From: Malacoraja senta
Lineage: Eukaryota
Reading direction: 5' to 3'
Length of the DNA stretch: 64,000 bases
NCBI GenBank assembly: GCA_038087875.1
Contig: JAXLNO010004994.1
Span: 1-64,000, forward strand
In this document: piece by piece, positions 12,594 through 64,000 of the stretch
Layout of the letters: each line of letters opens with the position of its first letter
Numbering within the stretch: position 1 is the stretch's first letter
Translations under genes and position numbers: made by a program
Notes under the pieces: generated by a model
What the model was told of the DNA's origin: nothing
Database searches by the model: none
Seen by the model: the letters and a program-made list of their open reading frames with translations, nothing else

Positions 12594-12869
12594 CTAAGAA
12601 ACAACAGAGGCATAAATTGTTTCAGAGTTCTCTGGAGCCCTAGTAGAGTGGGGTTTCCGATTGCCCTTTGGGCAGTTGCGATGAAAATTAACATCTGCGT
12701 AGAGAACAGTGTTGTGAGTCTCAGGGTGCATTAATCTCGACTTCCTTTGACATTTCACCACTGCATACGTGATTCCACCTTCATTGTTATCCAAATGGTC
12801 AGCTGCCCTGTTGTTTCCAATTTGCTGTAGATTTGCATCAACGTGGTTCCCTTCCAACACTGCCATTTC
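12594..12869 (-). CDS. Gene B terminal cytoplasmic exon with 2 ITIMs + 1 ITSM
   Basis: Acceptor ttttgttatattttag|GAA ATG (phase 0), open to TAG at 12594. ITYAVV (12756-12773), VLYADV (12690-12707) and TIYASV (12603-12620) match I/V-x-Y-x-x-V and T-x-Y-x-x-V. Confidence 0.88.
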   Translation of the reverse strand, partial: EMAVLEGNHVDANLQQIGNNRAADHLDNNEGGITYAVVKCQRKSRLMHPETHNTVLYADVNFHRNCPKGNRKPHSTRAPENSETIYASVVS

Positions 12870-13287
12870 CTAAAATATAACAAAATCCAATTTTACAACC
12901 TAATAGATTTGAAAGGTCCTCAACAGATGTCTATTACAAAGTAGGTCTCAAACTGTTCAGTGTACAGAACACGCCATTGCTGCTGTTTACAACACAAAGA
13001 TAGCGCAGCATGGTGGAGCAGCGGTAGAGTTGTTGCCTGACAGTGCCTACAACATGTTTGTAGGTTAATTGGTTTGGCATACTTGCAAATTGTCCCTAGT
13101 GTGCGTAGGATAGTTTTTGTGTGCGTGGGTCACCGGTCGGCGTGGACTCGGTGGGCCAAAGGGCCTGTTTCTGTGCTGGGTCTCTTAACTGGAGTGGACT
13201 GGTGTTGCTAAATGGCCTGTGTAAACACAGATAATTCAATATTATATATATTTCATCACTCAGAGAATTTATATTTCACATTTTTCC

Positions 13288-13334
13288 CTGGATTTCATTG
13301 TTGTCTTCACCGTGTGATGTATTGCACTTGGATT
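13288..13334 (-). CDS. Candidate 47-nt juxtamembrane cytoplasmic exon of gene B (ESKCNTSHGEDNNEIQ)
   Basis: Acceptor atattttccag; phase 1->0 exactly bridges the TM exon and the ITIM exon. The donor reads CAG|GGAAAA (GG, not GT). Confidence 0.35.
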
Positions 13335-13954
13335 CTGGAAAATATGTTGTCGATAGAGCCATATTATGAACAGGTTTAAACATCATTCATTCATATATTT
13401 CATTCATTTGTTTCATGTAACTTATATATCTCTTGTTTCCCTTTCACCTGACTCTCAGTCTGAAGAAGGGTCTCGCCTCGAAACGTCAACTGTTCCTTTA
13501 CAAGAGTCAAGAGAGTTTTATTGTCACATGTCCCAGATAGAACAATGACAATCTTACTTGCTGCAGCACAACAGAATATGTAGACATAGTACATAACGGG
13601 AGAGAAAAAAAAGTTCAATGTGTATATATACACATACACACATACTCAATCTGTTTCTTTTATCCAGCTAAGCTGAAAACCACTATATTTGATGATTTTC
13701 TGTTGCGCTGCTGGCAAAATGTCGCCCCTGACCGCTAATTGCTAGAGCATTTTATGTTTATCTTCAGTGTAAACCACCATCTGCAGTTCCTTCCAACACA
13801 CGTGTTGTTGCCACGACCTTATATTTAGGAGAACCCCAAAAGCACTGCAGTATATTTGCACGTACGGAGTAAGAATCTGCCCTGTTGTTTTGGTTACTGT
13901 ACGTAATGTTCAGAATGGATCATATTCCCTGTACTCTACCCCATCCCACCCTAA

Positions 13955-14345
13955 ATTTGCCTAAACCTACCTGATCTCCCGGTTGATCAACACTTTAACT
14001 CCTCCTCCCATTCCCACACTAACCATTCTGTCCTGGGCCTCATCCATTGTCAGAGTGAGGCCCAGCACAAATTGGAGAAACAGCACCTCATATATCCTTG
14101 GGCTGGTTACACCCCAGCGGTATGTACATTGACTTCTCTAACTTCAAGCAGCCCTTGCTTTCCCTCCCTCCATCCACTCCCCCTTCGCAGGTCTCTGACC
14201 AGTCTTACTGTCTCCGACTATACTTTATCTCAGAACTGCCACTCGCCTGACATCAGTCTGAAAAAGAGTTTCGACCTAAAACATCACACATTACTTCTCT
14301 CCAGAGATGCTGCTTGTTTCACTCAGTTACTCCAGCATTTTGTGT
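13955..14345 (+). mobile_element. Penelope-like 3' fragment
   Basis: ctaaacctacctgatctcccggttg..cactttaac..ttggagaaacagcacctcatat..ttgggc motif and a degenerate terminal motif. Confidence 0.65.
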
Positions 14346-15465
14346 CCACACCCTAACCTAATCTGCTTAAAAAGGTTTTCATAAGTTCATAAGCGATAAG
14401 AGTAGAATTAATCTATGCAGCCCATCCATCTACTCCGCCATTTAATCATGGGTCATCTATCTCTCCCTCCTAACCTCTTTTTCCTGCCTTCCCTCCATAA
14501 TCCAGGACACCTGTACGAATCAAGAATCTATCTATGCCTTAAAAATATCTATTGACGGGCTCCACAGCCATCTTTGGCAAAGAATTCCACAGATTCATCA
14601 CCCTCTGACGAATTAAATTCTTCCTCATCTCCATCATAAAGGAATGTCCTTTAATTCTGAAGTTATGATCTCTGGTCCTAGACTCTCCCACTAATGGAAG
14701 CATCCATTCTACATCCACTATATCTAGGCCTTTCACTATTTGATCTTTCAATGAGGTTCCCCCCCTCTTTTCCCTCTTACACTGTTTTATTGGGTCTTGG
14801 ATCTGAAATGTTGACTGTTTTACTTTCCACTAATGCTCTCTGACTGAGGAACAGCTCAGTGAACTTTCACATTTTCATCGGCGGTTGAGATAGTTGGCAG
14901 CTTCAAGTTCATGGGTGTTCACTTCTTGGATTATCTGTCCAGGCTAGACCTGCCCTGCCTCAACTACCTCCTCTGGCAGCTCCTGTCATATACCCACCGC
15001 CCTCTGTGTGAGGCAGGTATGTTGTATGTTGTCTATGTCCCTGTGAGGCTGCAGGTGTGATCTTCATTGTAACTGTACTTCACCATGCTTGTGCATGTGA
15101 CAATAAACACGACTTAATCTGATTTGAAATACAACAGCTAATCACACGAAGCATATTCTAACAGCTGAGAGGATGAGAGTATCGATGTAAATCTTACTTC
15201 TACCTAGCCTCTTATTTCTCACGCATCTCTGCCCATTTCACACTCAGACAGTTTAAGTACAATGATGTTAAAAGAACAGTTTTTGTCACCGAGTCACCAT
15301 GATAGCATCAAACGTGATAGCATTATTGATCATCCATACTTCCTCCAACACTTTATTACTTTAATGCAGGGCATTTGTTGATTAGATCAGAATTAAATCT
15401 CTTGACATTCTGGAAGGAACTGAGACATGTATTGTGAAATTATTTAAGGGAAGTCAGAAACTCAC

Positions 15466-15554
15466 CCTTGGTTTTACGCTTTCGGTACCAAAAGAAGGCA
15501 ATGATGAGAATCAGGAGAAGCACAGTGACACCAGACGCAACTATGTAAGTGATC
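15466..15554 (-). CDS. Gene B transmembrane exon, uncharged (R-ITYIVASGVTVLLLILIIAFFWYRKRKTK)
   Basis: Acceptor cccttccctattctctgtccgacag|G, donor AAG G|GTGAGT; 89 nt, phase 2->1. Hydrophobic run followed by an RKRK stop-transfer signal. Phase matches the 49-nt stalk exon. Confidence 0.9.
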
Positions 15555-15859
15555 CTGTCGGACAGAGAATAGGGAAGGGTGAGGTATGGCTCATCATTGC
15601 TTCTTGGCCTTCAGTAAAGAACAAAAGTCAACAATTTATATGGCACCTTTCATGATTTTTTTGAAGTGTGCAGCAAAGGAAATTAAGTGTAGAGTCTGTT
15701 TCGGTGAGTAACGCAGCAGCTAATCTGCTCACAGTAAGGTGACATTGACCAACGATCATGAAACTGGTTCAAGAGCAATTGCGTCCAACAATTAAGGAAC
15801 CCTCCCTTCCCCATCACAAACAATGCATGGGAACTGTTACACATTAATAGCAATGATTA

Positions 15860-16770
15860 ATTTAGTTTAGTTCAGCTGAGTTTGGTTTAGTTTAGTTTAG
15901 TTTATCATCCAACGGTGGGCGGCGCGACTCTCGTTTGCAGCGGCCTCTGCAGTCCGTCTGTCTTTTTATTATTTCTGTCTTGTTTTTATGTAGTTTTTTA
16001 TTATTTTTTTGTCGGTGTATGTGTGTGGGAGGGTGGAGGTGGGGGGGAGGGACTTTAAAATCTTTCCCCTGCACGGGAGACCCGACCTTTTCTTTGTCGG
16101 GTCTCCGTTGTCGTTGGGGCTGGGCAACGTGGAGCGGCCTCCAGCAGGAACGACCTGGGGCTCCAGTTGCGGAGCTGCGGACTACTCACCGTCGCGGGGC
16201 TGGCCGAGTCCGGAGCGGGGGGAGCTGTGGTGGAGACAATCGCTGTTGCTACCCGACCCCCGGAGATTCGGAGGCTACAACCGCGGGTCTGGCGGACGGC
16301 AACACCGGAAGCCCGCGGGTCCCCTGGTGGGAGACCGCTTTTCGCGGCTTTCGCAGCGGCGACTTCTCCCGCCCGAGTTGCGGGGTTGAAGAGCAGCTGG
16401 AGCGGGGCTTTACATCGTCGCCCCGCACGGCTTGGAATGGCCGCCGGACTTTGCGAGCGCGCGCCGGGGCTCTAACACCAAGACCCGGTGCGCGACCTTG
16501 CATTAACCGGCGTGGCTTTAATGGCCGCGGGATAATCGCCCGCCGGGGGCTTTGACTTTGACTCTGACATGGGGGGGGGGGGGAGTGCAGTGGAGAGATA
16601 CGTCTTTTTGCCTTCCATCACAGCGCTGTGATGGATGTATGTGTAAATTGTGTTGTGTCTCGGGTCTTCTTCGTTTTTGTAATGTATGGCTGCAGAAACG
16701 ACATTTCGTTTGGTCCAAAAGACAAAAAAGACAAATAAATTGTATTGTTGTTAATTTAATTTATTTTAGA
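15860..16770. mobile_element. Unclassified GC/CpG-rich interspersed insertion with (TTTAG)n flank
   Basis: Abrupt GC/CpG-rich block with a G13 run and a flanking simple repeat; no recognisable protein. Confidence 0.45.
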
Positions 16771-17651: not shown

Positions 17652-19547
17652 ATAGAAACATAGAAACATGGAAACATAGAAACATAGAAAATAGGTGCAG
17701 GAGGAGGCCATTCGGCCCTATCATTGCACCGCCATTCATTGAGATCATGGCTGAACGCCACCACTCAATAACCCATGCCTGCCTTCTCCCCATATCCCTT
17801 GGTTCCACTAGCCCCTAGAGCTCTATCTAACTCTCTCTTAAATCCATCCAGTGATTTGGCCTCCACTGTCCTCTGTGCAGGAAATTCCACAAATTCACAA
17901 CTGACTGGGTGAAAACGTTTTTCTCACCTCAGTCTTAAATGGCCTCTGCTTTATTCTAAGACTGTGGCCCCCTGGTTCTGGACTCGCCCAACATTGGGAA
18001 CATTTTACCTGCATCTAGCTTGTCCAGTCTTTAAAAATGTTTCTATAAGATACCCCCTCATCCTTCTAAACTCCAGTGAATACAAGCCTAGTCTTTTCAA
18101 TCTTTCCTCATAAGACAGTCCCGCCATCCCAGGGATCAATCTCGTGAACCTACGCTGGACTGCCTCAATCACAAGGATGACCTTTCTCAAATTAGGAGAC
18201 CAAAACTGTACACAATACTCCAGATGTGGTCTTAACAGAGCCCTATACAACTGCAGAAGAACCACTCTACTCCTATACTGAAATCCTCTTGTTAGCTTTC
18301 TTCACTGCCTGCTGTACCTGGACGCCAACTTTCAGTGACCGGTGTACAAGGACACACAGGTCTCGCTGTTCCTCCCCCTTACCTAACCTAACCCCATTGA
18401 GATAATAATCTGCCCCCTTTTTTTTGCCACCAAAGTGGATAACCTCACATTTATCTATATTATACTGCATCTGCCACGCATCTGCCCACACACTCAACCT
18501 GTCCAGGTCACCCTGCAACCTCCTAACATCCTCTTCACAGTTCACACTGCCACCTAGCTTTGTGTCATCCGCAAACTTGCTAGTGTTGCTCCTAATTTCC
18601 TCTTCCAAATCATTAATATATATGGTAAACAGTTGCGGCCCCAACACCGAGGCTTGCGGCACTCCACTCGCCACTGCATGCCATTCTGAAAAGGACCCGT
18701 TCACTCCTGCGCTTTGATTCCTGTCTGCCAACCAATTTTCTATCCACGTCAACACCCTACCAGTACCATGTGCTCTAATTTTAGTCACCAGTCTCCCATG
18801 CGAGACCTATCAAAGGCTTTCTGAACGTCTAGTGACACTACATCCACTGGCTGCCCTTCATCCATTTTACTTGTCACATCCTCAAACCATTCCAGAAGAT
18901 TAGTCAAGCGTGATTTTCCTTTCATAAATCCATGCTGACTTGGACTAATCATTTTACTGCTATCCAAATGCCCCATTATTACCTCTTTAATGATTGACTC
19001 CAACATCTTTCCCACCACCAAAGCCAGGCTAACTGGTCGGTAATTCCCCGTTTTCCCGCTCGCTCCTTTCTTGAAAAGTGGGATAACATTAGCTATCATC
19101 CAATCCACAGGAACTGATCCTGAATCTATTGAACATTCGAAAATGATCACCAATGCATCCACTATTTCTAGAGCCACCTCCCTGAGGACCCTGGGATGCA
19201 GACCATCATGCCCAGGGGATTTATCATCCTTCAGTCCCATTAGCCCAGCCAATACTATTTCTCGCCTAATGATAATTTATTTCAGTTCCTCTACCCCCTT
19301 TGATCCTCTGTCCTCCAGTACTTCTGGGAGATTGTTTGTGTCTTCCTTAGTGACGCCAGATCCATAGTACCTGTTCAACTCCTCTGTCATTTCCTTGTTC
19401 CCCATAATAATTTCACCCATGTCTGGTTTCAAGGGACCCACATCTAATTTTGCTACTATTTTTCCCTTAACATTTTCTAAAGAAGCTTTTACTATCCTTA
19501 TTTATATTCCTGGCCAGCTTCCCCTCGTACTTCATCTTTTCAGCCCG
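17652..19547 (-). mobile_element. CR1/L3-type LINE, 5'-truncated, disrupted RT
   Basis: ORF pieces KSPGHDGLHPRVL, GVPQASVLGP..FADDTKL and RPHLEYCVQFWSP; (ctatgttt)n tail. It interrupts sequence that is contiguous at about 47300. Confidence 0.92.
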
Positions 19548-21559: not shown

Positions 21560-21608
21560 CTTGAAGAATAATTGGTTCTTTTCGAAGTTTCACAAGAATA
21601 TTCAAGTC
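21560..21608 (-). CDS. Gene B 49-nt stalk micro-exon (G-LEYSCETSKRTNYSS-R)
   Basis: Acceptor tttttatttccttgttccaacag, donor AG|GTAAAC; phase 1->2 links C2a to the TM exon. Same length and EYSCE motif in gene A. Confidence 0.85.
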
Positions 21609-22897: not shown

Positions 22898-23217
22898 CAG
22901 TGCCGTTGATTTTCACTAGAAAACTACAGGGCACGTCACTGCTGGAGATGGACACGTTGACTATTTCACTGGATTTTGTTCCATTAATATTGAGGCTGTG
23001 CAGTAATATTGATGGTGCTGGTGTTTGAAGGATTGACAATGTAGATCCAAGGCATTTTGGTCTGAGATCTTTGAATCCACAGATAGGGTCTTTTCATACC
23101 AACTGTAGCTAATGGGCGGTGATCCACTGACCGCCTCACAGGACACTGTCACTGAGCCCCCGAGACAGGAGTCATTGACTGGTGACAGGAATCCAAGCAC
23201 AGGAACAGACACGAGTT
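22898..23217 (-). pseudogene. Gene B C2-type Ig exon C2a with a 1-nt deletion
   Basis: Intact splice sites (cacag|AA CTC; ACT G|GTAAGT) but 320 nt vs 321 nt in gene A. Frameshift after YYCTAS gives a stop at 22961. Confidence 0.8.
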
Positions 23218-24410: not shown

Positions 24411-24722
24411 CTTCAGATACTTGGAGATGTACTTTAAATGTTGGTTCGCCAGGTGTAATAATTCCACATCTGTACCATCCTGTATCTCCAGAGTGAAGAT
24501 CCTCCACAGTCACAGTAAATATTCCTCGTGCCGGGTTATCTGTGATTGTCACTCTACCGCTCTGTCCTTGTTTCCCATTTGTTTCCACTATATGTGTACA
24601 CTGGCGACTTGTCCCAGGGCACCAGTATTTTGTGTGTGAGCGGTACACTGCTGCATAGTGACAATCGATTGAGATCGCTCTTCCCACAACCCCTCGTACT
24701 TCGCTCTCTGCCCACAGTGCAC
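24411..24722 (-). CDS. Gene B V exon V3
   Basis: tttcag|GT GCA CTG TGG ... TCT GAA G|GTAGGT; 312 nt open; KYWCPG..C and DTGWYRC. Confidence 0.9.
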
Positions 24723-25973
24723 CTGAAACTGAAGGAAAATTCTTTCATAGATTGAAGAGCAACATTAGCCTTTCACAAACATATACATTATAGTATACAT
24801 CAATGTATACAGGGGCGTCCGCCCAGTGATTTTCTTAACTCTGTTGAATTCCACCTAGATTGCGATGAGAGACAGATACTGTACACCGTCCCTCACCATC
24901 TGCACGTCGTTCCAAAGCGCTTCCCAGCCAATGTGGGTGTGAATGGTGAATAATGATGCATTGAACACGGAGCCTGTTGCAATTGGAAGGTAATGTCTTG
25001 GGAGTCTTGGTGAGTTGCTGCAGTGCATCGTGCAGATGGTGCAAACTGCTGCTGCTCTGCATCAACCGGGTGTCTATCAAGTACGACTCTGGGTCATGAC
25101 AGAACAAACACAAGTGTTCGGCGAAATTGTAGCCTCGGCCAGTGCTTCTTAAACTGATGAATGGTTTACCCAAGGGTGAATGAAATTATTTTGGGGTGAA
25201 TGAGTTAATTCATGTGTTTTGCTCATGTGACAAAATAAATTATATATAAAATTATGCACAAGTGAAAATAAGATGATAATAACCAAAAAAAACATAAGAA
25301 TATTTGGTGGAGGGTGAATTAAATATTGTAATAAAGACTCAAGGGTGAATGGCACTGAAATAGTTTAAGAAACGCTGGCATTGTATAAGCTTGGTCTCTC
25401 TGATGTAAACCATTCACACTCTATTCTGGACTTCCAATCTGAACGTTTCCACACCTACTGGGAGTTCATTTCAAAATTCTCTTTGACAAAAGTAAGGGTT
25501 ATACTTGATGGAGTGACGGCCAAGTAGATTACAATTTAATTTAGTGATATTACTGGAGTTTAACACAAATTAACAGTTAAAATCATGAACATGATCATGA
25601 AATTGTACATCCTTGATTGTAAATGATGGCGGATCCAAACAGAATGCATTTGGTTGCTTTCAATGTCTCAAAGTGACTGTGAGACCTTAAGCGGCAGCCA
25701 AGCGGCATTTTTAAGGCAGAAGGCAGACATTTGATGGAGTGCACTCAACGCTTTGTGACAAGTGCATGTCTTTCTCTCCTTTGCTGAAATTGCTCAACAC
25801 CTCCATGGTGGAAGCTACGGGCAATTATTTGCCAGTCTCCCAAACAAACTCTCGCATTTTACACCATGAGCTCACGGTGGCTGCAATGATGCCGTCTGCA
25901 AATAACAAGAAATACATGAACATCACCACAAGGTGAATAGCAGCAGGTTCAGGGACACGAGAGGAACACTCAC

Positions 25974-26294
25974 CTGCATTGTTCATTTCTGTCACATAAC
26001 TGCACGTTCCTGCTCCTTTGAAGACTTTCACCTTGACTATTTCACTGGATTTTGTCCCACGATTATTTGCGGCTGTGCAGTAATATCGAAGGTGTTCACC
26101 TCTGAGGATTTCACAACTCAGATCCAGTTGATTGCCTTGCAAGATCGTTGAAACGCAATGCTCGTTCTTCTCAAACCATGTGTAATGGATGGGAAGGGAT
26201 CCACGGAGAGACTCACAGGACACTGACACTGAGCCTCCAAGACGTGAGGCATTTGCTGCTGACAGATAACTGAGCACAGGAGCAGACATGGGTT
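25974..26294 (-). CDS. Gene B C2-type Ig exon C2b (FCRL-like C2 motifs)
   Basis: cccacag|AA CCC ATG ... GCA G|GTGAGT; 321 nt open; PVL..GGSVSVSC..GSLPIHYTW..YYCTA. Confidence 0.9.
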
Positions 26295-28150: not shown

Positions 28151-28711
28151 CGGGGAAATGTCCGGGAGCAGAGGCTGGCTGGCTGCCGGGCGGTGGGTGG
28201 ACAATGGCTGCTGGCAGTGGGGGCGCATTTACTGGGCAGAGGGAGAGAGAGAGAGTGCACGGGGTGGGGAGGGGGTGACTGATTCCTAAGGTGGGGGCGG
28301 GAAGCGGACTGGCCTGCCCCGGGAGGACTGAACGCAGTCTGTGGAGCTCTGGGGACTGATTCCCTGTTTATGATTCTCCGGGTATTCAGACGGCGAGCAA
28401 CACTTGTTTCTCACTGATCTGTCGGATCATTAGTTTGAGTCGGAATGCAAACCTCTGACAGGGTGATATTTCATACAATTCAGAGGCAGGGAAATGTGTT
28501 GAGTGTCTTGAAGTGGGTGGCCGCTCAATGGCACAGAACCCGCACTGGGTGAGAGCAAACATGAGTGGGGTTTCCCGACCCTCGCCCGCTCCCCGCAGGC
28601 CTCTGCACTGCTGCGGAGCCTCGAGATATCGGTGCTGCCCTGACCCTTCCCGGAGAAAACATGGATCAGGCTTTTCAGTGGAGACATTAAGTCAATCGCT
28701 GCGAATCGTAC

Positions 28712-29026
28712 CGTCAGATACTTGGAGATATACGTTAAACATTGAATGGTCGGCAGGTGCTGTGATTCCACAGCTGTACCATCCGGTATCTCCAGAGTGA
28801 AGATCTTCCACAGTCATAGTAAATATTCTTAGTGCCGGTATATCGGTGATTGACACCCTTCCACTCCGTCCGTGTTGCCCATTTGTTTCCACCATATCTG
28901 TACATTGGCGACTCTGCCCACGGCACCAGTATTTAGCCTGTGAGCGGTACTCTGCTGCATAGTGACAATCGATTGTGATGGCTCTTCCCACAACTCCTGT
29001 TAAATTCCTCTCTCCCCACACTGCAG
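28712..29026 (-). CDS. Gene B V exon V4
   Basis: ctttcag|CT GCA GTG TGG ... TCT GAC G|GTACGA; 315 nt open; NLT sequon. Confidence 0.9.
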
Positions 29027-32996: not shown

Positions 32997-33311
32997 CGTC
33001 AGATACTTGGAGTTCTACGTTTAAGATTGAACGGCCGTTAGATGTTGTAATTCCTCACCTGTACCATCCTGTATCTCCAGAGAGAAGATCCTCCACAGTC
33101 AAAGTAAATATTCCTCGTGCCGGGTTATCTGTGATTGACATTCTTCCACTCCCTCCGTGTAGCACATTTGTTCCCACCATATCTGTACATTGGCGATTCT
33201 GCACACGGCACCAGTATTTTGTGTGTGAGCGGTTCTCTGCTTCATAGTGACAATAGATTGTGATCGCTCTTCCCACAATTCCTCTTACATACGTCTCTCC
33301 CCACACTGCAG
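32997..33311 (-). pseudogene. Gene B V exon V5 with a nonsense codon
   Basis: 315 nt with splice sites; the F-strand Cys codon is TGA (33055-33057, WYR*). Confidence 0.88.
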
Positions 33312-35479: not shown

Positions 35480-35794
35480 CGTCAGATACTTCGAGTAAAA
35501 CGTTAAATATTGGATGGTCGGCTGATGTTGTAATTCCACAGCTGTACCATCCTGTATCTTCAGAGTGAAGATCCTCCACAGTCACAGTAAATATTCCTCG
35601 TGCCAGGTTATCTGTGATTGACACTCTTCCACTCCGTCCGTGTTGCCCATTTGTTTCCACTAAAACTCTACACGGTCGACTCCTCCCACGGCACCAGTAT
35701 TTTGTGTGTGAGCGGTACTCTGCTGCATAGTGACAATCGATTGTGATCTCTCTTCCCACAACTCCTTTTACTTCCCACTTTGCCCACACTGCAC
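35480..35794 (-). CDS. Gene B first V exon V6
   Basis: Same splice sites as V1; 315 nt open; 6 nt different from V1. Confidence 0.92.
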
Positions 35795-37364
35795 CTGAAA
35801 CTGAGCGGAGAAACTTTCAGATGGAGAGCAAATTAACTGTTTAATGGTAATTGATACATTTTGAAGATTACATGAAAGAAAACGTAAAACGTTCCATAAT
35901 GTGTCATATTGCTTCACGACCAATGTCTCCGGTCTGAAGTGCAGACAGTGCTGTTATTGTACCAGTTGTGTCAATGTTCTGTCCGCGGGTCAGTGCAATT
36001 TGGGTTCACTTCCCACTCCAGATCCCTGAGCAGAAACTGGGCTGGGATCGCAGTGCGGTTCTGAGGGAGCGCGTCAGTTTTGCGGGAGCTGCCTTCCAAC
36101 AATCCTAGGCGGTGCCCGGCCTCTCACCCTAAAGAAAGACCCCACTTTGCTATTTAATTGGCGGTGCCGCCGGCTGCGCTGCCAACATTCATCTCTCAAC
36201 CGACACTGGGCCGGACCCGTGTTTTTTAAAAATATTATCAAATAATTTATTTAATTATTGAAAATAATATTTACGATACAATAAAACAAAACAGAACCCA
36301 CCACCATAATACGAGACAAACAAATAAACGAAATAAACTACTATACAACTATGTTACAATACTTGTCAAGGATGTATTCAACCCCAGGCGGTGCCCAGAA
36401 GTCCCGGAAACATTCATCTCTCAATCGACACTGGGCCGGACCCGTGTTTAGACATTCACCGCCGCCACTGCCTTTACAAAGCCCTGACTGAGGACACAGA
36501 GGACGGACGAGTTACAATAAAGCGGGTCCATTACCGGAGAGCGTTACTAGCGTGAAAACGCACACCGCCAGATTCGGGGACAGTTCCTTCGCAGTTGTAC
36601 TCAGACATCGGAATCATCCTACCACAACCAGAGAGCAGTGCTGAACTATCTACCTCTTTGGTGACCCTCGGACTACCCTTGATCGGACTTCGCTGGCTTT
36701 ACCTTACACTAAACTTTATTTCCCTTTCATGTATCTATGCACTGTAAGAGGATCGATTATAATCATGTATCTGGCTGGTTAGCACGCAAGAAAAAGCTTT
36801 TCACTGTACCTCGGTACACGTGACAATAAACTGAACTTGCATTTCAGCGCGACTGGGTTGCGGATTGGAAAGAGGATGGAGAGAGAGTTGGGGGTAGGTG
36901 GATAGAGCGAGGACAGTGGTTCAGTCTCAGACTCCGGGGAATTGTTCGGTTTGCGACAGAGTTCAGTTGGAAAATGCAGGGAATATTTGAATGACACAAT
37001 GAGTCCACAATCCCGACTCCCCCCTCAGTTGTAAACACATTTTAAAAGTGTAGAATCAACTTCCTGGTGATGCTGCAACCTCTGTCCTTCGGTCCAGGTA
37101 TCTTGGAGTATCGTCCCCAAATTCATTTGCTATTTTATGCCTATAAAATATCATCAGGATGCAATTAGACCGTGTCAACAGTGGTTAAAGTACGAACACA
37201 GTCTAGATATTCAAATGTGATTTCAGATCCATCACCACAATGCACTGAGTTGCACCTCCCCCATTACATGTCTACACATACTTAACTATCTCTGCTGTGA
37301 AAAGCGTGCATGGGACGCCAAATAACATTGATCATTGGAATATCAGGATCTGGCTTTCACTCAC

Positions 37365-37401
37365 CCGGCAGCGAGGAGATGAGAAGAATGGGAATCCACA
37401 T
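37365..37401 (-). CDS. Gene B signal-peptide exon (MWIPILLISSLP-G)
   Basis: ATG at 37401; donor G|GTGAGT, phase 1. Confidence 0.88.
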
Positions 37402-39695
37402 TGTTTTATCCACAGTGACGAGGTCAGTACTTGTCAGTCTGTCGCTCAGCTCGTAGCTCTCAGATACAACCGCATCTCTCGAATAGCAACGACGAAGAAG
37501 GGAACAGGACTTCAGATCGTGAACCACAGCGAGCCAGCAGCAGCTCGACACGTTACAGTGTGAAAGGATCAGGGTTATATTTAACAAATGGTTGGGTCGG
37601 ATGATCACAGTCATACGTCACGGAAACAGGCCATTCTCCCCAACGCGTTAGACCAATGTGCTCATCTAAGTTAGTCAGATTTTCCCACGTTCAACCCGAA
37701 ACTCCCCAAACCTTCCCCATACTTGGACCTGTCCAATGCTCGTTACATGTTGTTATTGCAGCTGCCTCAACCACTTCGTCAGGTATGATGTATCCGTTAG
37801 GATGCAGCGGCGATTATCTCTGTACTCAGAGTCTGTTAACACTGAACAGTGGTGGGAATAATGATAGACAAAAAAATTCATAAGGAACTCTGCGGGCCAG
37901 GCAGCACCTCTGGAGAAAATGGTTAGGTGACGTTTTGGGTCGGGCCCCTTCATGTAAACAATGATACATTGGATAAAATATGACATGATTTAGAATTGTA
38001 GAAACGTCTAAGATGTGTACACTTCCGGATCATTCCCTCTTGATGATTTTGTAAGTGGACCGGCAGATCAAAAATATAATAATTGGAACTTTTGTTTTTG
38101 CTTATTACTGTTGACAAGGGGCAAAACAGGAAGCTGGCGTTAGGAAGTAGGGGATTTTCACCTGAAATCAGCTGAGGTTAATTGGAGTTTGACCCTCTCC
38201 TCTCTGATTCAACTCTTCAATTCAAATTTGAAACACTATTGTCATGGTATTCACGTTTTGAAAATAGAAAATTAACGGTCTGGAGGACTGTGAAGAAGTT
38301 TGTCTAGAATTACCACAGGATGGAGATCAGCTGGGAAAGCGGGATGTGGAATGTAACTGACATGTGTAATGTAACTCAACAAGGGCGAAGTGATACACTT
38401 AATGAAGTTAAAGCAAGGTAGAATATGCACGGTGAATTGAATTATTAACTTGTCTTCTTTACAATGCAGAGCGAATACATTATCAGAGTTGTGTTCATGT
38501 TCATTCCATTGGCTGACTTTGTACATCTGCTTGCAACGATTTCATTCTGTAGGCAACTAGTTGCATTATAATATAACCTAATATCTGCTGCCGTCTATCG
38601 TTCTGGTGTGTCACTTTCAGTGGAACAGTGCCGTTTATTCGGGTTGTGTAAATCTGTGGCAATGTTGTGTATCACGTGGTATGGGTGTAATACACTGATG
38701 AGTCCGCCACTGGTGTTAGCTGAGCGTTGGCGACCCTCAGTAAAGGATCTTTTGTTAGGAGCTATTTCCTGTATACTTGCCCACCTAAAACACTGCAGAG
38801 AGGAACCGACGATGCAGCAAAACAATTGAATTCTGTCTACATTCGCCTTTGACCCATGACTACTGCAAACACTTCTCAAAAATTTATTAAGAAGCATCCT
38901 GATGCATAATTATTTATTTATCAGCGAAAACATTTTTTTCCAGGAAGTTGAATGCATATAACTTATTTTAACAGAGTATAAGACTTTTGAGCAGCAGAAA
39001 CCACGCAGAGGTTAAAACAATAGTTCGAAGGTGATGAAAGAAACCTTGGAAGAGGTGACAAACATTAAGACCAGTGCGGTAAATGAGTTTTGGAAACAGA
39101 TATGGTTTAGAAAGTTTGGAACATTGCTTTGAAGTCACTTTCATGAAATCGTTCGTTGAATTGCAAGAGACGTATATTCTGTCCAATTGATATCAGTTGA
39201 CAAAGCAGGATGATGCATAAATATTTCATCGCGGTGCAGAATTCACTCATTGATGGTGCAAGCTAGGAGACTTCATTCTAATTCGTGTGTCGAGTGGCGA
39301 GGTTCTGATTCATCGCGTCTCTGCAAAAGACAATGTGAAGTCATCAGACTCACTGACAGTGGGAACCACGCTTTATTTGACCCGACCACCCCCAACACAT
39401 GGCTGTCTGGAAGATGGACCCCAACGAATCCACACCGCGCACAGAAATCCACCCAGCACACGTACAACCTGACAAAACCACATGATATCATCTACATAGT
39501 GATTTGGTTTAACTTCAGGTTATGAAAACGTGCACGATTTTTGTTTCTATCAATGGACAGGATATTTGAAAGCATTAATGAAAACCGTTTGGATACATTC
39601 GGCGAAGAGAATTGATTGTTTTGGGCAGAGGGTGGTGAATCAATGGATTTCATTACCATAGGAGGCTGCGGAGGCCAAATCAATTCACTCCGGAG

Positions 39696-48126: not shown

Positions 48127-48175
48127 CTTGCAGAGTTATTGGATGTTATCGAATTTTCACAAGAATATTCATGAC
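48127..48175 (-). CDS. Gene A stalk micro-exon, downstream copy (G-HEYSCENSITSNNSA-S)
   Basis: tctttgttccaacag|GT ... AG|GTAAAC; 49 nt, phase 1->2. Confidence 0.8.
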
Positions 48176-49442: not shown

Positions 49443-49541
49443 CAGTGCCGTTGATTTTCACTAGAAAACTGCAGGGCACGTCACTGCTGGAGATGGACAC
49501 GTTGACCATTTCACTGGATTTTGTTCCATTATTATTGGAGG
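49443..49541 (-). pseudogene. Duplicated 3' fragment of the C2a exon (donor intact, no acceptor)
   Basis: Identical to the 3' end of exon 52022-52342, cut at the duplication junction. Confidence 0.85.
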
Positions 49542-50706: not shown

Positions 50707-50755
50707 CTTGCAGAGTTATTGGATGTTATCGAATTTTCACAAGAATATTCATGAC
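50707..50755 (-). CDS. Gene A stalk micro-exon, upstream copy
   Basis: Identical to 48127-48175. Confidence 0.8.
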
Positions 50756-52021: not shown

Positions 52022-52342
52022 CAGTGCCGTTGATTTTCACTAGAAAACTGCAGGGCACGTCACTGCTGGAGATGGACACGTTGACCATTTCACTGGATTT
52101 TGTTCCATTATTATTGGAGGCTGTGCAATAATATTGATGGTGCTGGTGTTTGAATGATTGACAATGCAGATCCAGGGCATTTTGGTCTGAGATCTTTGAA
52201 TCCACAGATGGGGTCTTTTCATACCAGCTGTAGCTAATGGGCGGTGATCCGCTGACCGACTCACATGACACTGTCACTGAGCCCCCGAGACAGGAGACAT
52301 TGGCTGGTGACAGAAATCCAAGCACAGGAACAGACACGGGGT
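52022..52342 (-). CDS. Gene A C2a exon (intact)
   Basis: tcccacag|AC CCC GTG ... ACT G|GTAAGT; 321 nt open. Confidence 0.9.
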
Positions 52343-53531: not shown

Positions 53532-53843
53532 CTTCAGATACTTGGAGATGTACTTTAAATGTTGGTTCGCCAGGTGTAATAATTCCACATCTGTACCATC
53601 CTGTAACTCCAGAGTGAAGATCCTCCACAGTCACAGTAAATATTCCTCGTGCCGGGTTATCTGTGATTGACACTCTTCCGCTCTGTCCATGTTTCCCATT
53701 TGTTTCCACTATATGTGTACATTGGCGACTTGTCCCAGGGCACCTGCATTTTGTGTGTGAGCGGTACACTGCTGCATAGTGACAATCGATTGAGATCGCT
53801 CTTCCCACAACCCCTCGTACTTCGCTCTCTGCCCACAGTGCAC
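53532..53843 (-). CDS. Gene A V exon V7 (open, but core Trp->Arg and Asp->Val)
   Basis: 312 nt with splice sites; KCRCPG instead of KYWCPG, and VTGWYRC instead of DTGWYRC. Confidence 0.75.
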
Positions 53844-54739
53844 CTGAAACTGAAGGAAAATTCTTTCATAGATTGAAGAGCAAAATTAGTCTTTCACAAA
53901 CATATACATTATAGTATACATCAATATATACAGGGGAGTCCGCCCAATGATTTTCTTAACTCTGTTGAATTCCACCTAGATTGCGATGAGAGACAGATAC
54001 TGTACACCGTCCCTCACCATCTGCACATCGTTCCAAAGCGCTTCCCAGCCAATGTGGGTGTGAATGGTGAATAATGATGCATTGAACACGGAGCCTGTTG
54101 CAATTGGAAGGTAATGTCTTGGGAGTCTTGGTGAGTTGCTGCAGTGCATCGTGCAGATGGTGCAAACTGCTGCTGCTCTGCATCAACGGGGTGTCTATCA
54201 AGTACGACTCTGGGTCATGACAGACCAAACACAAGTGTTCGGCGAAATTGTAGCCTCGGCCAGTGCTGCTTAAACTGATGAATGGTTTACCCAAGGGCGA
54301 ATGAAATTATTTTGGGGTGAATGAGTTAATTCATGTTTTTTGCTCATGTGACAAAATAAATTATATATAAAATTATGCACACGTGAAAATAAGATGATAA
54401 TAACCAAAAAAACATAAGAATATTTTGTGGAGGGTGAATTAAATCTTGTAATAAAGACTCAAGGGTTAATGGCACTGAAATAGTTTAAGAAACGCTGGCA
54501 TTGTATAAGCTTGGTGTCTCTGATGTAAACCATTCACACTCTATTCTGGACTTCCAATCTGAACGTCTCCACGCCTACTGGGAGTTCATTTCAAAATTAT
54601 CTTTGACAAAAGTAAGGGTTATACTTGATGGAGTGACGGCCAAGTGACTCCACCTAAATTTTGTGAGATTACTGGAATTCCAGTGATTCACACAAATTAA
54701 CAGAGTTAAAATCATGAACATGATCATGAAATTGTACAT

Positions 54740-55199
54740 AGGTACACAAAAATGCTGGAGAAACTCAGCGGGTGCAGCTGCCTCTATGGAGCGAAGGAAA
54801 TAGGTAACGTTTCGGGCCGAAACCCTTCTTCAGACTGATAGGGGGTGGGGAGAAGAAAGGAAAAAAGGAAAAGGCGGAGGAGGAGCCCGAGGGCTGGGGG
54901 AGGGGAGGAGACAACCAGATGGCTGATGAAGGGGAGGGGACAGCCAGGGCTTGCAGAATTGGGAGAATTCAACGTTCAGGCCACCAGGATGTAGACTGCC
55001 CAAGCGGAATATGAGGTGCATTTCCTCCAATTTACGGTGTTGCTCGCTGTGGCCATGGAGGAGACCCAGGACAGAGAGGTCAGATACGGAATGGGAGGGG
55101 GAGTTGAAGTGCTGAGCCACCGGGAGTTCAGGTTGGTTATTGCGGACCGACCGGAGGTGTTCGACGAAACGATCGCCAAGCCTCCGCTTGGTCTCACAT
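54740..55199 (-). mobile_element. Gene-A-specific Penelope-like insertion
   Basis: TKRRLGDRFVEH..LIFRLGSL translation; empty site in gene B (gtacatccttgattg); acat at both ends. Confidence 0.85.
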
Positions 55200-55561
55200 C
55201 CTTGATTGTAAATGATGGCGGATCCAAACAGGATGCATTTGGTTGCTTTCAATGTCTCAAAGTGACTGTGAGACCTTAAGCGGCAGCCAAGCGGCATTTT
55301 TAAGGCAGAAGGCAGACATTTGATGGAGTGCACTCAACCCTTTGTGACAAGTGCATGTCTTTCTCTCCTTTGCTGAAATTGCTCAACACCTCCATGGTGG
55401 AAGCAACGGGCAATTATTTGCCAGTCCCCCAAACAAACTCTCGCATTTTACACCATGAGCTCACGATGGCTGCAATGATGCCGTCTGCAAATAACAAGAA
55501 ATCATGAACATCACCACAAGGTGAATAGCAGCAGGTTCAGGGACACGAGAGGAACACTCAC

Positions 55562-55881
55562 CTGCACTGTTCATTTCTGTCACATAACTGCACGTTCCTG
55601 CTCCTTTGAAGACTTTCACCTTGACTATTTCACTGGATTTTGTCTCACGATTATTTGCGGCTGTGCAGTAATATCGAAGGTGTTCACCTCTGAGGATTTC
55701 ACAACTCAGATCCAGTTGATTGCCTTTCAAGATCGTAGAAACCCAATGCTCGTTTTCTCAAACCATGTGTAATGGATGGGAAGGGATCCACGGAGAGACT
55801 CACAGGACAATGACACTGAGCCTCCAAGACGTGAGGAATTTGCTGCTGACAGATAACTGAGCACAGGAGCAGACATGGTTT
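55562..55881 (-). pseudogene. Gene A C2b exon with a 1-nt deletion
   Basis: 320 nt; ctcgttttctc vs ctcgttcttctc in gene B; reads WFEKTSIGFLRS*. Confidence 0.8.
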
Positions 55882-58293: not shown

Positions 58294-58608
58294 CGTCAGA
58301 TACTTGGAGATGTACGGGAAACAATGGATGTTCGGTGGATGCTGTGGTTCCACACCTGTACCATCCTGTATCTCCAGAGTGAAGATCTTCCACAGTCACA
58401 GTAAATATTCTTAGTGCCGATATATCTGTGATTGACACTCTTCCACTCCGTCCGTGTTGCCCATTTGTTTCCACCATATCTGTACATTGGCGACTCCACC
58501 CACGGCACCAGTATTTTGTGTTTGAGCGGTAATCTGCTGCATAGTGACAATCGATTGTGATCGCTCTTCCCACAACACCTGTTACATTCCTCTCTCCCCA
58601 TACTGCAG
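58294..58608 (-). CDS. Gene A V exon V8
   Basis: atttcag|CT GCA GTA TGG ... GAC G|GTACGT; 315 nt open. Confidence 0.9.
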
Positions 58609-60999
58609 CTGAAATGGAGGGGAAAAACTTTCAGATGGAGAGCAAATGAACTGTTTAATGGTAATAGATACATTTTGAAGATTACATGAAAAACATAATC
58701 GTTCCATGATGTGTCATATTGCTTCACGACCAATGTATCCGGTATGAAGTGCGGCAGTGCTGTTATTGTATCAGTTGAGTCAGTGTTCTACCCCCCGGTC
58801 AGTACAATTTGGGTTCACTTCTCACTCCAGATCCCTCAGCAGAAACTGGGCTGGGATTGCAGTGCGGCACTGAGGGAGCGCGGCAGTGTTGCAGGAGCTG
58901 CCTATCAACAATCCCAGGCGATACCCGGCCTATTCCCTTCAGAAAGACCCCATTTTGCTATTTCAGTTTCGGCGCTGCCAACATTCATCTCTCAACCGAC
59001 ACTGGGCCGTACCCGTGTTTAGAAATTCACCGCAACCACTGCCTTTACAACCCCCTGACTGAGTACGGACGGGTTACAATAAAGCGGGTCCTTACTGGAG
59101 AGCGTTACTAGCGTGAAAACGCACACCGCCAGATTCACTGTACGTCGGTACTCGTGACAATAAACTAAACTGAATTGTGAGCCCAATGTCCCGCTGCTCA
59201 TCTGGGACAGGTTTTATTCCCAATGACCCCGGCTCGCCCTGGACAATTCAGCACGACTGGGCCACGGATCCGAGAGAGGATGGAGAGAGAGTTGGGGGTG
59301 GGTGGATAGAGCGAGGACAGTGGTTCAGTCTCAGACTCCGGGGAATTGTTGGGTTTGCGACACAGTTGAGCCGGACAAATGCTGGGAATGTTTGAACTGA
59401 CACAATGAGTCCACAATCCTGACTTCCACCTCCTTGGTAAACACATTTTAAAAGTGTAGAATTAACTTACAGATGACGTTGGAACCTCTCGCCTTCGGTC
59501 CAGGTGTCTTGCAGTATCTGCTTCAAATTTCTTCGCTATTTTAAGCCTTTCATTTATCACCAGGATGCAATTCGACCATGTGTCAACAGTGGTTAAACTA
59601 CGAACATTGTGTAGATATTCAAGTGTGATTTCAGATCCATCACCACAATGCACTGAGTTCCATTTCCCCCATTACATGTCTATACACAGTTAACCATCTC
59701 TGCTGTGGAAAACGAATTTACGATCCCTTTAAGATAGACACAAAATTCTGGAGTAACGCAACGGAGCAGGCAGCATCTCTCGAAAGAAGGAATGGGTGAC
59801 GTTTCCTGTCGAGACCCATCTTCAGCCTGAGAATCATGGGACAGGGAGACAGAAGATAAATGGAAAGGTAAGGTGTGAAAACAAGTGATCAAAGGTGAAA
59901 AGAAAATGGACAATGGATCATTGTGAGCTGAAGGGAAGGTGACAACGAGGCATACAATAAGTAAAATAAAATCAGTTTGACTGTGCAACTAACTGGAGAG
60001 CTAGGATGGTGGCGGGATGGGGACAGGAGTAAAGCAAGGGTTCCTTGAAGTTAGAGAAGTCAATATTCAAACCGATGGGTTGTAAGTTGCCCAGGTGCTT
60101 TTCCTCCTATTTACTTTGGATAGTGGAGGAGGTCCAGGACGGAAAGTTGAGTTTGGGGACGGGAGGGGGAATTAAAGTGTTTAGCAATCGGGAAGTAGCG
60201 TAGGCCGAAGCAGACTGAGCGGAGTTATTCAGCGAAACGATCGCCGAGTCTGCGCTTGGTCTCGCCGATATATAGTAGTTCACATCTGGAACAGCGGATG
60301 TACTAGGTGAGCAAGGAGGAGATGCAAGTGAATCCTCACCCGGAAAGATTGTTGCAGACCTTGGAGGGAGCAGAGGAAGGAGGTATCGAGACAGGTGATC
60401 TATCTCCTGCAGTTGTCGGGGAAGGTACTTGGGGAGGGGATGGGTTTTTTTGGGGGGGGGGAGGATGGACGTTGACCAGGGAGTTACGGAAGGAACGGTC
60501 TCTTCGGAAAGCAGAAAGCGGTGGAGATGGAAAGATGTGGCTAGTTGTGGGATCGCGTTGGAGGTGGCGAAAATGTTGGAGGATTATGTGTTGTGTGCGA
60601 CGGCTGATGGGGTGAAAGATGAGTTTATTCTGCTTACCACCGGGGAAATGTCCGGGTGGAGAGGTTGGCTGACTGCCGGGCGGTGGGTGGACAGTTGCTG
60701 CTGGAGATGGGGGCGCATTGACGGGGCAGAGGGAGAGAGAGAGAGCGCGGGGTTTGGGAGGGAATGGCTGATCCCCGAGGTGAGGGCGGGAAGCGGGATG
60801 GCCTACCCCGGGAGGACTGATCGCAGTCTATTGAGCTCTGGGGACTGATTTTTTTAAACTCTCGTGGTATTCAGACCGTGAGCAACACTTGTTTCTCACT
60901 GATCTGTCGGATTATTAGTTTGAGTCGAAATGCAAACTTCTGACAGGGTGACATTTCATACAGTTCAGAGGAAGGGAAATGTGCTGAGCATTCCACTTG

Positions 61000-62365
61000 A
61001 AGTGAAAAGTGAAGTGAATGAGAAGTTAAATTCCACTTTTCAAAAAAGGAGCGATAGAAAAAACGGGGAATTATAGACCAGTTAGCCTGACTTCGGTGGT
61101 GGGAAAGATGCTGGTGTCAATTATTAAAGAGGTAATAATGGGGCATTTCGATAGCAGTAAAAGGATTAGTCCAAGTCAGCATGGATTTATGAAAATCATG
61201 TTTGACTAATCTTCTGGATTTTTTTGAGGATGTGACAAGTAAAATGGATGTAGGGGAGCCAGTGGATGTAGTGTAACTAGACTTTCAGAAAGCCTTTGAT
61301 AAGGACCCGCCCGAGGGAATGGTGACTAAAATTAGAGCGATTGGTGTTGGGGGTAGGGTGTTGACGTGGGTGGTGTTGGGGCCGCAACTGTTTACCATAT
61401 ATATTAATGATTTGGAAGAGGGAATTAGGAGCAACACTAGCAAGTTTGCGGATGACACAAAGCTGGATGGCAGTGTGAACTGTGAAGAGGACGTTAGGAG
61501 GTTGCAGGACAGGTTGACCGAGTGGGCAGATGCGTGGCAGTATAATATAGATAAATGTGAGGTTATCCACTTTGGTGGCAAAAACAAGGGGGCAGATTAT
61601 TATCACAACCGGGTTAGGTTAGGTAAGGGGGAGGAACAGCGAGACCTGGGTGTCCTTGTACACCGGTCATTGAAAGTTGGCTTGCAGGTACAGCAGGCAG
61701 TGAAGAAAGCTAATGGAATGTTGGCCTTCATAACAAGAGAATTTCAGTATAGGAGTAGAGAGGTTCTTCTGCAGTTGTATAGGGCTCTGGAAAGACCACA
61801 TCTGGAGTATTGCGTACAGTTTTGGTCTCCTAATTTGTGGAAGGACATCCTTGTGATTGAGGCAGTGCAGCATAGGTTCACGAGATTGATCCCTGGGATG
61901 GCGGGTCTGTCTTATGAGGAAAGATTGAAAAGACTAGGCTTGTATTCACTGGAGTTTAGAAGGATGAGGGGATATCTTATAGAAACACATAAAATTGTAA
62001 AAGGACTAGACAAGCTAGATGCAGGAAAAATGTTCCCAATGTTGGGCGAGTCCAGAACCAGGGGCCACAGTCTTAGAATAAAGGGGAGGCCATTTAAGAC
62101 TGAGGTGAGAAAAAACGTTTTCACCCAGAGAGTTGTGAATTTGTGGCATTCCCTGCCACAGAGGACAGTGGACGCCAAATCCCTGGATGGATTTAACAGA
62201 GTCAGATAGAGCTCCAGGGTCTAGTGGAATCAAGGGATATGGGGAGAAGGCAGGCACAGGTTATTGATTGGGGACGATCAGCCATGATCGCAATGAATGT
62301 CGGTGCTGGCTCGAAGGGCCGAATGGCCTCCTCCTGCACCTATTTTCTATGTTTCTATGTTTCTA
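61000..62365 (+). mobile_element. CR1 LINE 3' part (paralogue of 31329-32796)
   Basis: 296-aa RT-region ORF, same flanks and tail. Confidence 0.92.
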
Positions 62366-62564
62366 AGTGGGTGGCCGCTCAATGGGGCAGACCCCGCACA
62401 GGGTGAGAGCAAAATGAGTGCGGTTTCCCGACCCCTGCCCGCTCCCCGCAGGTCTCTGCACTGCTGCGGAGTCTCGGGATATCGGTGCTGCCCTGCCCCT
62501 TCCCAGAGAAAACATGGATCAGGCATTTCAGTGGAGACATCAAGTCAATCGCTGCGAAACGTAC

Positions 62565-62879
62565 CGTCAGATACTTGGAGTTCTACGTTTAACATTGGAC
62601 GGCCGTTAGATGCTGTAATTCCACACCTGTACCATCCTGTATCTCCAGAGTGAAGATCCTCCACAGTCAAAGTAAATATTCCTCGTGCCGGGTTATCTGT
62701 GATTGACACTCTTCCACTCCGTCCGTGTAGCCCATTTGTTTGCACCATATCTGTACATTGGCGACTCTAAACACGGCACCAGTATTTTGGGTGTGAGCGG
62801 TACTCTGCTGCATAGTGACAATCGATTGTGATCGCTCTTCCCACATCTCCTGTTACATACGTCTCTCCCCACACTGCAG
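62565..62879 (-). pseudogene. Gene A V exon V9 with a nonsense codon
   Basis: 315 nt with splice sites; TAG at 62767-62769 (KYWCRV*); F-strand Cys intact. Confidence 0.88.
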
Positions 62880-64000
62880 CTGAAATGAAGGGGAGAAACT
62901 TTCAGATGGAGAGAAAATGAACTGTTTAATGGAAATAGATACATTTTGAAGAAAACATGCAAGAAAACTTAAATCGTTCCACGATGTGTCATATTGCTTC
63001 ACGGCCAATGTCTCCGGTCTGAAGTGCAGGCAGTGCTGTTATTGTACCTGTTGTGTCAGTGTTCTGTCCCCGGGTCAGTACAATTAGGGTTCACTTCCCA
63101 CTCCAGATCCCTGAGCAGAAACTGGGCTGGGATCGCAGTGCGGTACTGAGGGAGCGCGGCAGTGTTGCAGGAGCTGCCTTTCAACAATCCCAGGCGGTGC
63201 CCGGCCTCTCACCCTGCAGAAAGACCTCACTTTGCTATTTCATTGGCGGTGCCGCCGGCTACGCTGCCAACATTCATCTCTCAACCGACACTGGGCCGGA
63301 CCCGTGTTTAGGCATTCACCGCCGCCACTGCTTTTACATAGCCCTGACTGAGAACAGAGGACGGACGGGTTACAATAAAGCGGGTCAAGAAATAAGAGAC
63401 AATAGGTGTAGGAGTAGGCCATTCGGCCCTTCGAGCCAGCACCGACATTCACTATGATCATGGCTGATCATCCACAACCAGTACCCCGTTCCTACCTTCT
63501 CACCATTTCCCATAGCGCCGCTATCTTTTAGAGCTCCATCTAACTCTCTCGCTCTGACGTTTCGGGTCGAGACCCATGCTCAGACCCGAAACGTTACCCA
63601 TTTCTTCTCTCCAGAGATGCTGCCTGAATCGCTGAGTTAATCCAGCATTTTTTGTCTATCTTTAATTGTCTTTTATTTCCTTATCTCAACAGAACCTAAA
63701 TCTATTCGTGATTCGTTAACATCAGTAGGGTTCACTTCAAATACAAATGTAACACCCGATAACAATCATCAGGAAACCACTGCGCCCAGTTACTCTAACG
63801 GGTATAGTGTTCTCTTGCTCAATTTTTGATTGGTCTTGCTTTTCAATATGAGAGGTGGAGACACAAGGAACTGTAGATACATACATAGATAAATAGATAC
63901 ATATATACATAGGCAATAGGTGCAGGAGTAGGCCATTCAGCCCTTCGAGCCAGCACCGCCATTCAATGTGTTCATGGCTGATCATCCAGAATCAGTAACC

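Follow-up and report, generated by a model that had tools for sequence, protein, structure and literature searches.

The MDIRs (modular domain immune-type receptors) found in skates, as they were reportedly described in 2006, carry one to six modular immunoglobulin (Ig) domains, which belong to several subfamilies, and are akin to CD300, pIgR, TREM, and NKp44, as well as to homologs of Fc receptors. One account treats these proteins as a multigene family of skates that includes both activating and inhibitory receptors, and that is kin to CD300, TREM, FCAR, and pIgR (PMC3031540). The subject here is a stretch of 64,000 nucleotides (nt) from the skate Malacoraja senta (positions 1 to 64,000 of contig JAXLNO010004994.1, assembly GCA_038087875.1), called "the window" in what follows. 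To judge from kinship to known proteins, this window is probably part of a tandem MDIR array, in which an inhibitory gene resembling MDIR3 (gene B) stands beside a gene resembling MDIR5 (gene A), whose transmembrane (TM) segment carries an arginine. All of the relevant exons of both genes are on the minus strand.

Immunoreceptor tyrosine-based inhibitory and switch motifs (ITIMs and ITSMs) recruit SHP or SAP-type SH2 proteins. In CD89, NKp30, and NKp46, an arginine near the top of the TM segment binds the paired aspartates of FcRgamma or zeta dimers (PMC13107469). The mammalian systems to which A and B are most usefully compared are paired receptors whose activating member uses such an arginine to dock FcRgamma or zeta: CD89 (FcalphaRI), NKp46, and LILRA versus LILRB. 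These share with A and B near-identical ectodomains that end either in an ITIM tail or in an arginine TM with a short tail, an arrangement in tandem clusters, the homogenization of ectodomains within a species, and an arginine followed by approximately 17 hydrophobic residues. They differ in that A and B interleave V domains of the pIgR/CD300 type with C2 domains of the FcRL type; there is no orthology.

Two genes with parallel exons

A six-frame scan of the window, together with inspection of exon ends, delivers two parallel series of Ig exons on the minus strand. An earlier note, made from the sequence alone, had described these series, and every feature that it named is present at the coordinates given there. 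Each gene has five or six Ig exons, of V-set and C2 types; these are 315–321 nt long, are bordered by AG and GT throughout, and are all in phase 1-1. The V-set exons match Pfam PF07686 (E 4e-13 to 6e-8), and the C2-type exons match Pfam Ig_3, Ig_2, and Ig_C17orf99. Among solved structures, the nearest to the V exons are pIgR (E 4e-49, summed over domains), CD300 (E 5e-18), NKp44, and TREM2; the nearest to the C2 exons is FcRL5.

Gene B begins with a leader, followed by five usable Ig exons (V-V-C2-V-C2) and one dead V exon; then come a stalk, the uncharged TM, an exon of 47 nt, and a tail with two ITIMs and a terminal ITSM. Gene A has the same ectodomain block and the same type of stalk; its 5' end lies beyond the window. 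In both, the ectodomain leads to a 49-nt stalk exon ending in phase 2, and from there to TM exons that are unrelated, uncharged in B and bearing an arginine in A. The tail of B carries the tyrosine motifs ITYAVV, VLYADV, and TIYASV. The stalk exons, the TM exons, and the tail motifs had been read correctly in the earlier note (Table 1). Each of the two TM exons, and the ITIM tail exon, occurs once in the window.

In the earlier note, the TM exon of B was followed by its tail. Both exons are real, but their phases do not agree, with 1 at the end of the TM exon and 0 called for by the tail exon, and a direct join runs into a stop. Thus, the TM exon cannot splice straight to the tail, and the 47-nt exon, which had been missed, must intervene, as it does in MDIR3.

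In gene A, the arginine and the 17 hydrophobic residues after it are followed by a second arginine. The terminal exon encodes a tail of 15 residues, making a cytoplasmic part of approximately 20 residues that is free of tyrosine. As had been claimed, gene A carries no ITIM behind its TM exon.

Membership in the MDIR family

When one V exon was compared with 1.84 billion representatives by phmmer, the matches were multi-Ig proteins of skates, rays, and sharks, which NCBI names "polymeric immunoglobulin receptor-like" or "CMRF35-like." The closest of these homologs, used in turn as the query, also brought up two proteins of Rostroraja eglanteria, "Modular domain immune-type receptor 3" and "5." The strongest protein matches, at 80–89% per module, all come from Rajiformes (Leucoraja, Amblyraja, Rhinoraja, and Rostroraja). 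MDIR1 was not among the proteins retrieved with a single-V, arginine-TM protein, and a query with the stalk, TM, and tail of MDIR5 returned only two proteins, a limit set by the word index.

The conceptual product of gene B, with the dead V exon omitted and an X set at a 1-nt gap, is 79.5% identical to MDIR3 of the clearnose skate over 699 amino acids, end to end. That of gene A matches MDIR5 at 78.4% identity over 486 amino acids. When MDIR3 is placed on the window by tblastn, its matches are collinear with gene B: leader (37413-37366), V, V, C2, V, C2, stalk, TM (15562-15464, 88%), short exon (13332-13288, 87%), and tail (12869-12597, 78%). Both genes are collinear with their respective MDIR proteins across every exon joint, stalk to TM included. 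This excludes the possibility that the exons of A and B were assembled by chance. It also backs the frames in which the earlier note had joined stalk to TM, because MDIR3 and MDIR5 cross those joints in the same frames. The junctions 21560>15554 and 48127>43054 are thus predicted from homology to MDIR3 and MDIR5, and so is the lack of an ITIM in gene A.

The likeness extends to details. MDIR3 (Rostroraja (Raja) eglanteria, the UniRef entry P0166) is collinear with B from leader to stop, has the order V-V-C2-V-C2, an EYSC stalk, and an uncharged TM followed by RKRKTK, and has the tyrosine motifs ITYAVV, V(V/L)YADV, and (S/T)IYASV at the same places. It differs as a protein of another species, or a paralogue, would, with approximately 20% divergence; B has, in addition, a further V exon, which is dead, has lost 1 nt from its last C2 exon, and shows GG as a donor in this assembly. 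MDIR5 (from the same species, the UniRef entry P0186) shares with A, nearly unchanged, the stalk GHEYSCEN..., the TM SYISWKVGRWL(L/F)FLLL.IWSISTAVFTR, and the tail (K/R)RDESEPRHS.HEL. Unlike A, it has four Ig domains; A has more V exons (one dead), a C2 frameshift, and a duplicated stalk exon.

With full-length kinship, a modular ectodomain that mixes V and C2 domains, ITIM versus charged-TM forms, and several genes together, A and B are, by these features of their sequence, new members of the MDIR family, which has been known since 2006. The earlier note had proposed kinship to MDIR and CD300, and this is borne out. It had also suggested that the layout might not be annotated, and this is not: the family and its activating and inhibitory forms have been described, and close homologs are annotated as "pIgR-like" in other skates. 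A and B are therefore not an unrecognized kind, and the pair adds no new kind of system.

The name "pIgR-like" nevertheless hides MDIR-type paired receptors in elasmobranch genomes. It reflects the V domains alone, for which pIgR and CD300/CMRF35 are the nearest solved relatives. In true pIgR, every domain is of the V type, and the long tail serves sorting and lacks an ITIM; membership of A and B there was rejected, as their C2 exons alternate with V exons and their tails carry ITIM/ITSM motifs or are 15 residues long. True CD300 membership was likewise rejected on domain architecture: CD300 has a single V, whereas A and B alternate C2 with V and end in ITIM/ITSM tails or an arginine TM.

Several NCBI models of related species fuse MDIR genes with their neighbors (P0024, which is Rhinoraja longicauda XP_078277019.1, P0001, and P0015). 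The fusions include a TRIM69-like N-terminus on an arginine-TM MDIR and two receptors within one model. The annotation of these arrays is unreliable.

A shared ectodomain block and two signaling ends

Self-comparison of the window identifies 22452-34411 and 51594-63997 as a segmental duplication with 93–96% nucleotide identity. The earlier note had held that A and B are adjacent with near-identical ectodomains, and both points hold. The likeness falls to 79–84% in the stalk regions, and there is no match beyond them. At the protein level, the membrane-proximal V-C2 modules of A and B are 94% identical, while the TM and tail exons are unrelated.

This likeness does not stop at the exons. Introns between paired exons are 94–98% identical, and the exons themselves 91–98%. 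Because the introns are alike too, the likeness of the ectodomains goes back to a recent event, duplication or conversion, that took in the whole block, rather than to selective conservation.

The membrane-proximal V-C2 modules of five skate species, placed in a maximum-likelihood tree, deliver the same picture. Here, A and B of the window are sisters (100/99), and the arginine-TM and ITIM genes of Rhinoraja fall together (100/99). The grouping is thus by species, not by type of TM, and the arginine-TM label requires three changes on this tree.

The signaling end of A has a different history. Of the 223 proteins collected, 38 carry the motif W-x-V/I/L-x-R-W-h-h-F, with 40 occurrences in all, and its arginine is present in every one. 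Its carriers are skates, stingrays, sawfish, and several orders of sharks. In these homologs the arginine is followed by 16–17 hydrophobic residues, and the proteins mostly end approximately 33 residues past the motif. A typical ITIM within 90 residues of the motif was found in none of the 38; two Mobula isoforms have an atypical SQYRGL there.

Thus, the ectodomain block is evidently one that was recently duplicated or converted between A and B, and the signaling ends are evidently old. TM and tail modules that are conserved across species, joined to ectodomains that group by species, make the pattern of classical paired receptors. The window offers an exon-level genomic picture of how skate MDIRs would make inhibitory and arginine-TM forms: a shared, recently homogenized ectodomain block is connected to one of two old, trans-species signaling ends through a 49-nt, phase-shifting stalk exon. 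The evolutionary logic is the same as that of mammalian KIR, LILR, and PIR pairs, here in a cartilaginous fish.

By analogy with these pairs, we infer that B inhibits and that A activates via an adaptor, with a shared ligand possible. The phosphorylated tail of B would recruit SHP-type phosphatases. The arginine of the A type would, like that of CD89 and NKp46, dock the acidic pair of a dimer of the zeta/FcRgamma family. The ectodomains, being near-identical, could then see the same ligand, with opposite outcomes.

A broader hypothesis can be built on the conservation of the arginine-TM module. The MDIR5-type module (a W-x-V-x-R-W TM with a short tail) may have been an adaptor-coupled activating end already in the shark-ray ancestor, kept while ectodomains were exchanged with ITIM-bearing neighbors. 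MDIRs would then be paired receptors in the strict sense, with an Arg-Asp-Asp assembly of the zeta/gamma type and a stalk exon that switches the frame between membrane and soluble forms. We regard this as falling just short of an even call. If it is true that the MDIR5 module is coupled to an adaptor, paired Arg-Asp-Asp receptors would be found in the oldest jawed vertebrates. The conservation of the module justifies a search for its adaptor.

The stalk exon has further features of its own. In gene A it is doubled, in this assembly, by a 2.58-kilobase (kb) tandem duplication (46951-49541 versus 49529-52120, 99.6% identity), which also copies the last 99 nt of a C2 exon and keeps the AG/GT borders. 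If both copies are included, a stop follows directly after the stalk. Skipping of the stalk exon shifts the reading of the TM exon by one frame, to VTSHGKWGAGCSFSCL..., and NCBI models in Leucoraja and Amblyraja (P0004, P0005, and P0206) end in exactly that peptide. The 49-nt exon may, therefore, switch the frame between a form with a TM and one with a short C-terminus that lacks it. A cysteine near the membrane, in EYSC, is conserved in both stalks, in MDIR3, in MDIR5, and in other skate homologs, and may serve a disulfide-linked dimer.

Lesions and competing explanations

Several findings weigh against A and B being a working inhibitory and activating pair. The two differ by 20 synonymous and 38 non-synonymous changes, with a ratio of non-synonymous to synonymous differences per site (pN/pS) of 0.58; because this rests on only 58 changes, constraint since the duplication is not demonstrated. 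The proposals in the earlier note that A and B share a ligand and that A couples to FcRgamma or CD3zeta are both weakened, as the identity of the ectodomains includes the introns and there is no clear purifying selection. The genes are, moreover, damaged. One C2 exon in each has lost a single nucleotide (the last C2 in B, the first in A), V exon 4 of A has core changes W>R and D>V, and the donor of the 47-nt exon of B (13287-13286) reads GG in this assembly. Both genes also have a dead second V exon, each through a stop of its own, TGA in B and TAG in A. What the earlier note had called near-identical ectodomain exons are real exons, but these stops and the 1-nt deletions had been overlooked.

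Independent DNA comes from two sequencing runs, X1 and X2, the sole runs with this locus; a search of runs with the 91-nt A-type TM exon gave single-word matches only, all in other organisms. It counts on the same side that both are genomic DNA, with depth even over introns and exons and single contigs that span exon and intron. So does an X2 contig that, placed on the intact C2 exon of B, shows the deletion of A (26167, "left out 1"). Because that contig repeats the deletion, the frameshift in A is real DNA, not an assembly slip. For B, both runs have T at the donor where the window has G (plus strand, 13286 C>A), which restores GT, and an X2 contig at single-copy depth has the base that is absent at 22991, although this contig could be the A copy passing the 95% threshold. 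B may, then, be intact in other individuals, and A looks more decayed than B.

The depth of DNA reads over 23.4-27 kb, in the ectodomain block, is 3–4x the single-copy level, so further copies of the block exist. Around the TM exon of B (15187-15944), X1 and X2 are approximately 3% off the window, with the same 23 differences in both runs. The divergence near the TM and the raised depth over the ectodomain indicate a divergent haplotype, further paralogues, or both.

How, then, should these lesions be understood? One explanation makes one or both genes pseudogenes, in a fast-turnover array with many decaying copies and with no working pair here. The 1-nt deletions, one of them seen in independent DNA as well, the changed core of V exon 4 in A, the stop in the second V exon of both genes, the GG donor, the decayed A-type remnant at 5.5-6.0 kb, and a divergence in exons that is about that in introns all fit it. 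They fit it less well when set beside splice sites that are kept at every Ig exon, TM and tail exons that are intact and close to MDIR3 and MDIR5, and the failure of two of three lesions in B to appear in other DNA (the donor in X1 and X2, and 22991 in X2, the latter with the reservation just made). Further, because all Ig exons are in phase 1-1, skipping a damaged one preserves the frame. We consider decay of this kind a serious possibility that stops clearly short of being probable, and the haplotype may carry null alleles or pseudogenes. A functional pair is plausible, but in this assembly neither member encodes an intact protein: at least one lesion in each gene breaks the frame, which makes it doubtful that this haplotype has a pair that works.

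A different doubt concerns A alone. Its arginine might sit at the membrane edge without an adaptor, making A a decoy that is null for signaling, or A might be secreted, through the skipping or doubling of the stalk that shifts the frame of the TM or brings a stop right after the stalk. The 2006 description by Cannon and colleagues is said to ascribe a charged TM to MDIR1 and to leave MDIR5 without signaling motifs. One survey, further, finds no FcRgamma in cartilaginous fish (PMC4016189). These two points also count against an activating A. We consider a decoy or secreted A unlikely. The arginine, present at all 40 occurrences of the motif in sharks and rays and followed by 16–17 hydrophobic residues, has the geometry of CD89, NKp46, and LILRA; a conserved buried charge that is left unpaired is costly; and MDIR5, as it stands in UniRef, reads the TM frame.

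A and B might also be a single gene with alternative 3' ends, as the two 3' ends share a strand and each follows an ectodomain block similar to the other, and a relic of an A-type terminal exon lies downstream of B. This is highly improbable, because each ectodomain block has its own 3' end, and MDIR3 and MDIR5 are filed as separate proteins. It was rejected on the position of the leader ATG of B at 37401, which lies between the blocks, 1.9 kb below the stop of A, and on the presence of no second copy of either TM exon or of the ITIM tail exon in the window. An MDIR3-like gene beside an MDIR5-like gene is, accordingly, the reading that we prefer for the layout of the locus.

Coordinates and neighboring features

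The MDIR-type content of the 64 kb is genes B and A, the start of a gene C, and one relic (Table 1). No TM exon accompanies the relic within the window.

Table 1. Exons of the MDIR-type genes in the window and what supports or marks each.
Feature	Positions	Strand	Evidence or remark
Gene C, leader and first V exon	133..2056	minus	leader near 2056-2020, V near 456-133; 94% identical to 5' end of gene B
A-type gene relic: fragment of V exon 4 and copy of A-type terminal exon (RRDESEAGHSTHELQ, stop)	5469..6043	minus	downstream of B
B terminal exon: ITYAVV (ITIM), VLYADV (ITIM), TIYASV (ITSM), stop	12594..12869	minus	78% to MDIR3 tail
B cytoplasmic exon SKCNTSHGEDNNEIQ, 47 nt	13288..13334	minus	tblastn of MDIR3 596-610
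B TM exon ITYIVASGVTVLLLILIIAFFWYRKRKTK, uncharged	15466..15554	minus	88% to MDIR3 TM
B stalk exon LEYSCETSKRTNYSS, 49 nt, phase 1 to 2	21560..21608	minus	sequence; MDIR3 alignment
B C2-type exon b, 320 nt, frameshifted: one base absent at 22991/22992	22898..23217	minus	alignment with gene A copy
B V exon 4	24411..24728	minus	Pfam V-set; solved kin pIgR, CD300, NKp44, TREM2
B C2-type exon a, FcRL-like, intact	25974..26294	minus	Pfam Ig_C17orf99/Ig_2/Ig_3; 72% to MDIR3
B V exon 3	28712..29026	minus	Pfam V-set E 4e-13; AG/GT
B V exon 2, pseudo-exon, TGA at 33057-33055 instead of second Ig Cys	32997..33311	minus	splice sites kept
B V exon 1, pIgR/CD300-type V-set	35480..35800	minus	Pfam V-set E 5e-13; AG/GT; 321 nt; 78% to MDIR3 D1
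B leader exon MWIPILLISSLP, ends in phase 1	37365..37401	minus	tblastn of MDIR3 residues 1-16; GT donor
A terminal exon RRDESEPRHSTHELE and stop, no tyrosine, no ITIM	39273..39320	minus	as in MDIR5 and Rhinoraja P0024
A TM exon SYISWKVGRWLFFLLLAIWSISTAVFTRSSK, WKVGRW: Arg then 17 hydrophobic residues	42964..43054	minus	77% to P0024; near-identical to MDIR5 TM
A stalk exon, downstream copy HEYSCENSITSNNSA, 49 nt, phase 1 to 2	48127..48175	minus	sequence
A stalk exon, upstream copy, within 2.58-kb tandem duplication	50707..50755	minus	self-comparison; identical to downstream copy
A C2-type exon b, intact	52022..52342	minus	Pfam; FcRL5 nearest solved relative
A V exon 4: Y>C, W>R at conserved YWC; D>V in DxGxYxC	53532..53849	minus	Pfam score lower, 33.2 bits against 49.6
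A C2-type exon a, 320 nt, frameshifted: one base absent between 55755 and 55754	55562..55881	minus	sequence comparison
A V exon 3	58294..58608	minus	Pfam V-set E 2e-10; AG/GT
A V exon 2, pseudo-exon, TAG at 62769-62767	62565..62879	minus	sequence

The long introns of both genes also hold open reading frames for the reverse transcriptase and endonuclease of long interspersed nuclear elements, at 44487-46802, 39800-42700, and 17660-19490 on the minus strand and at 61277-62206 on the plus strand. The one at 44.5-46.8 kb encodes 772 amino acids and lies in an AT-rich block (29% GC).

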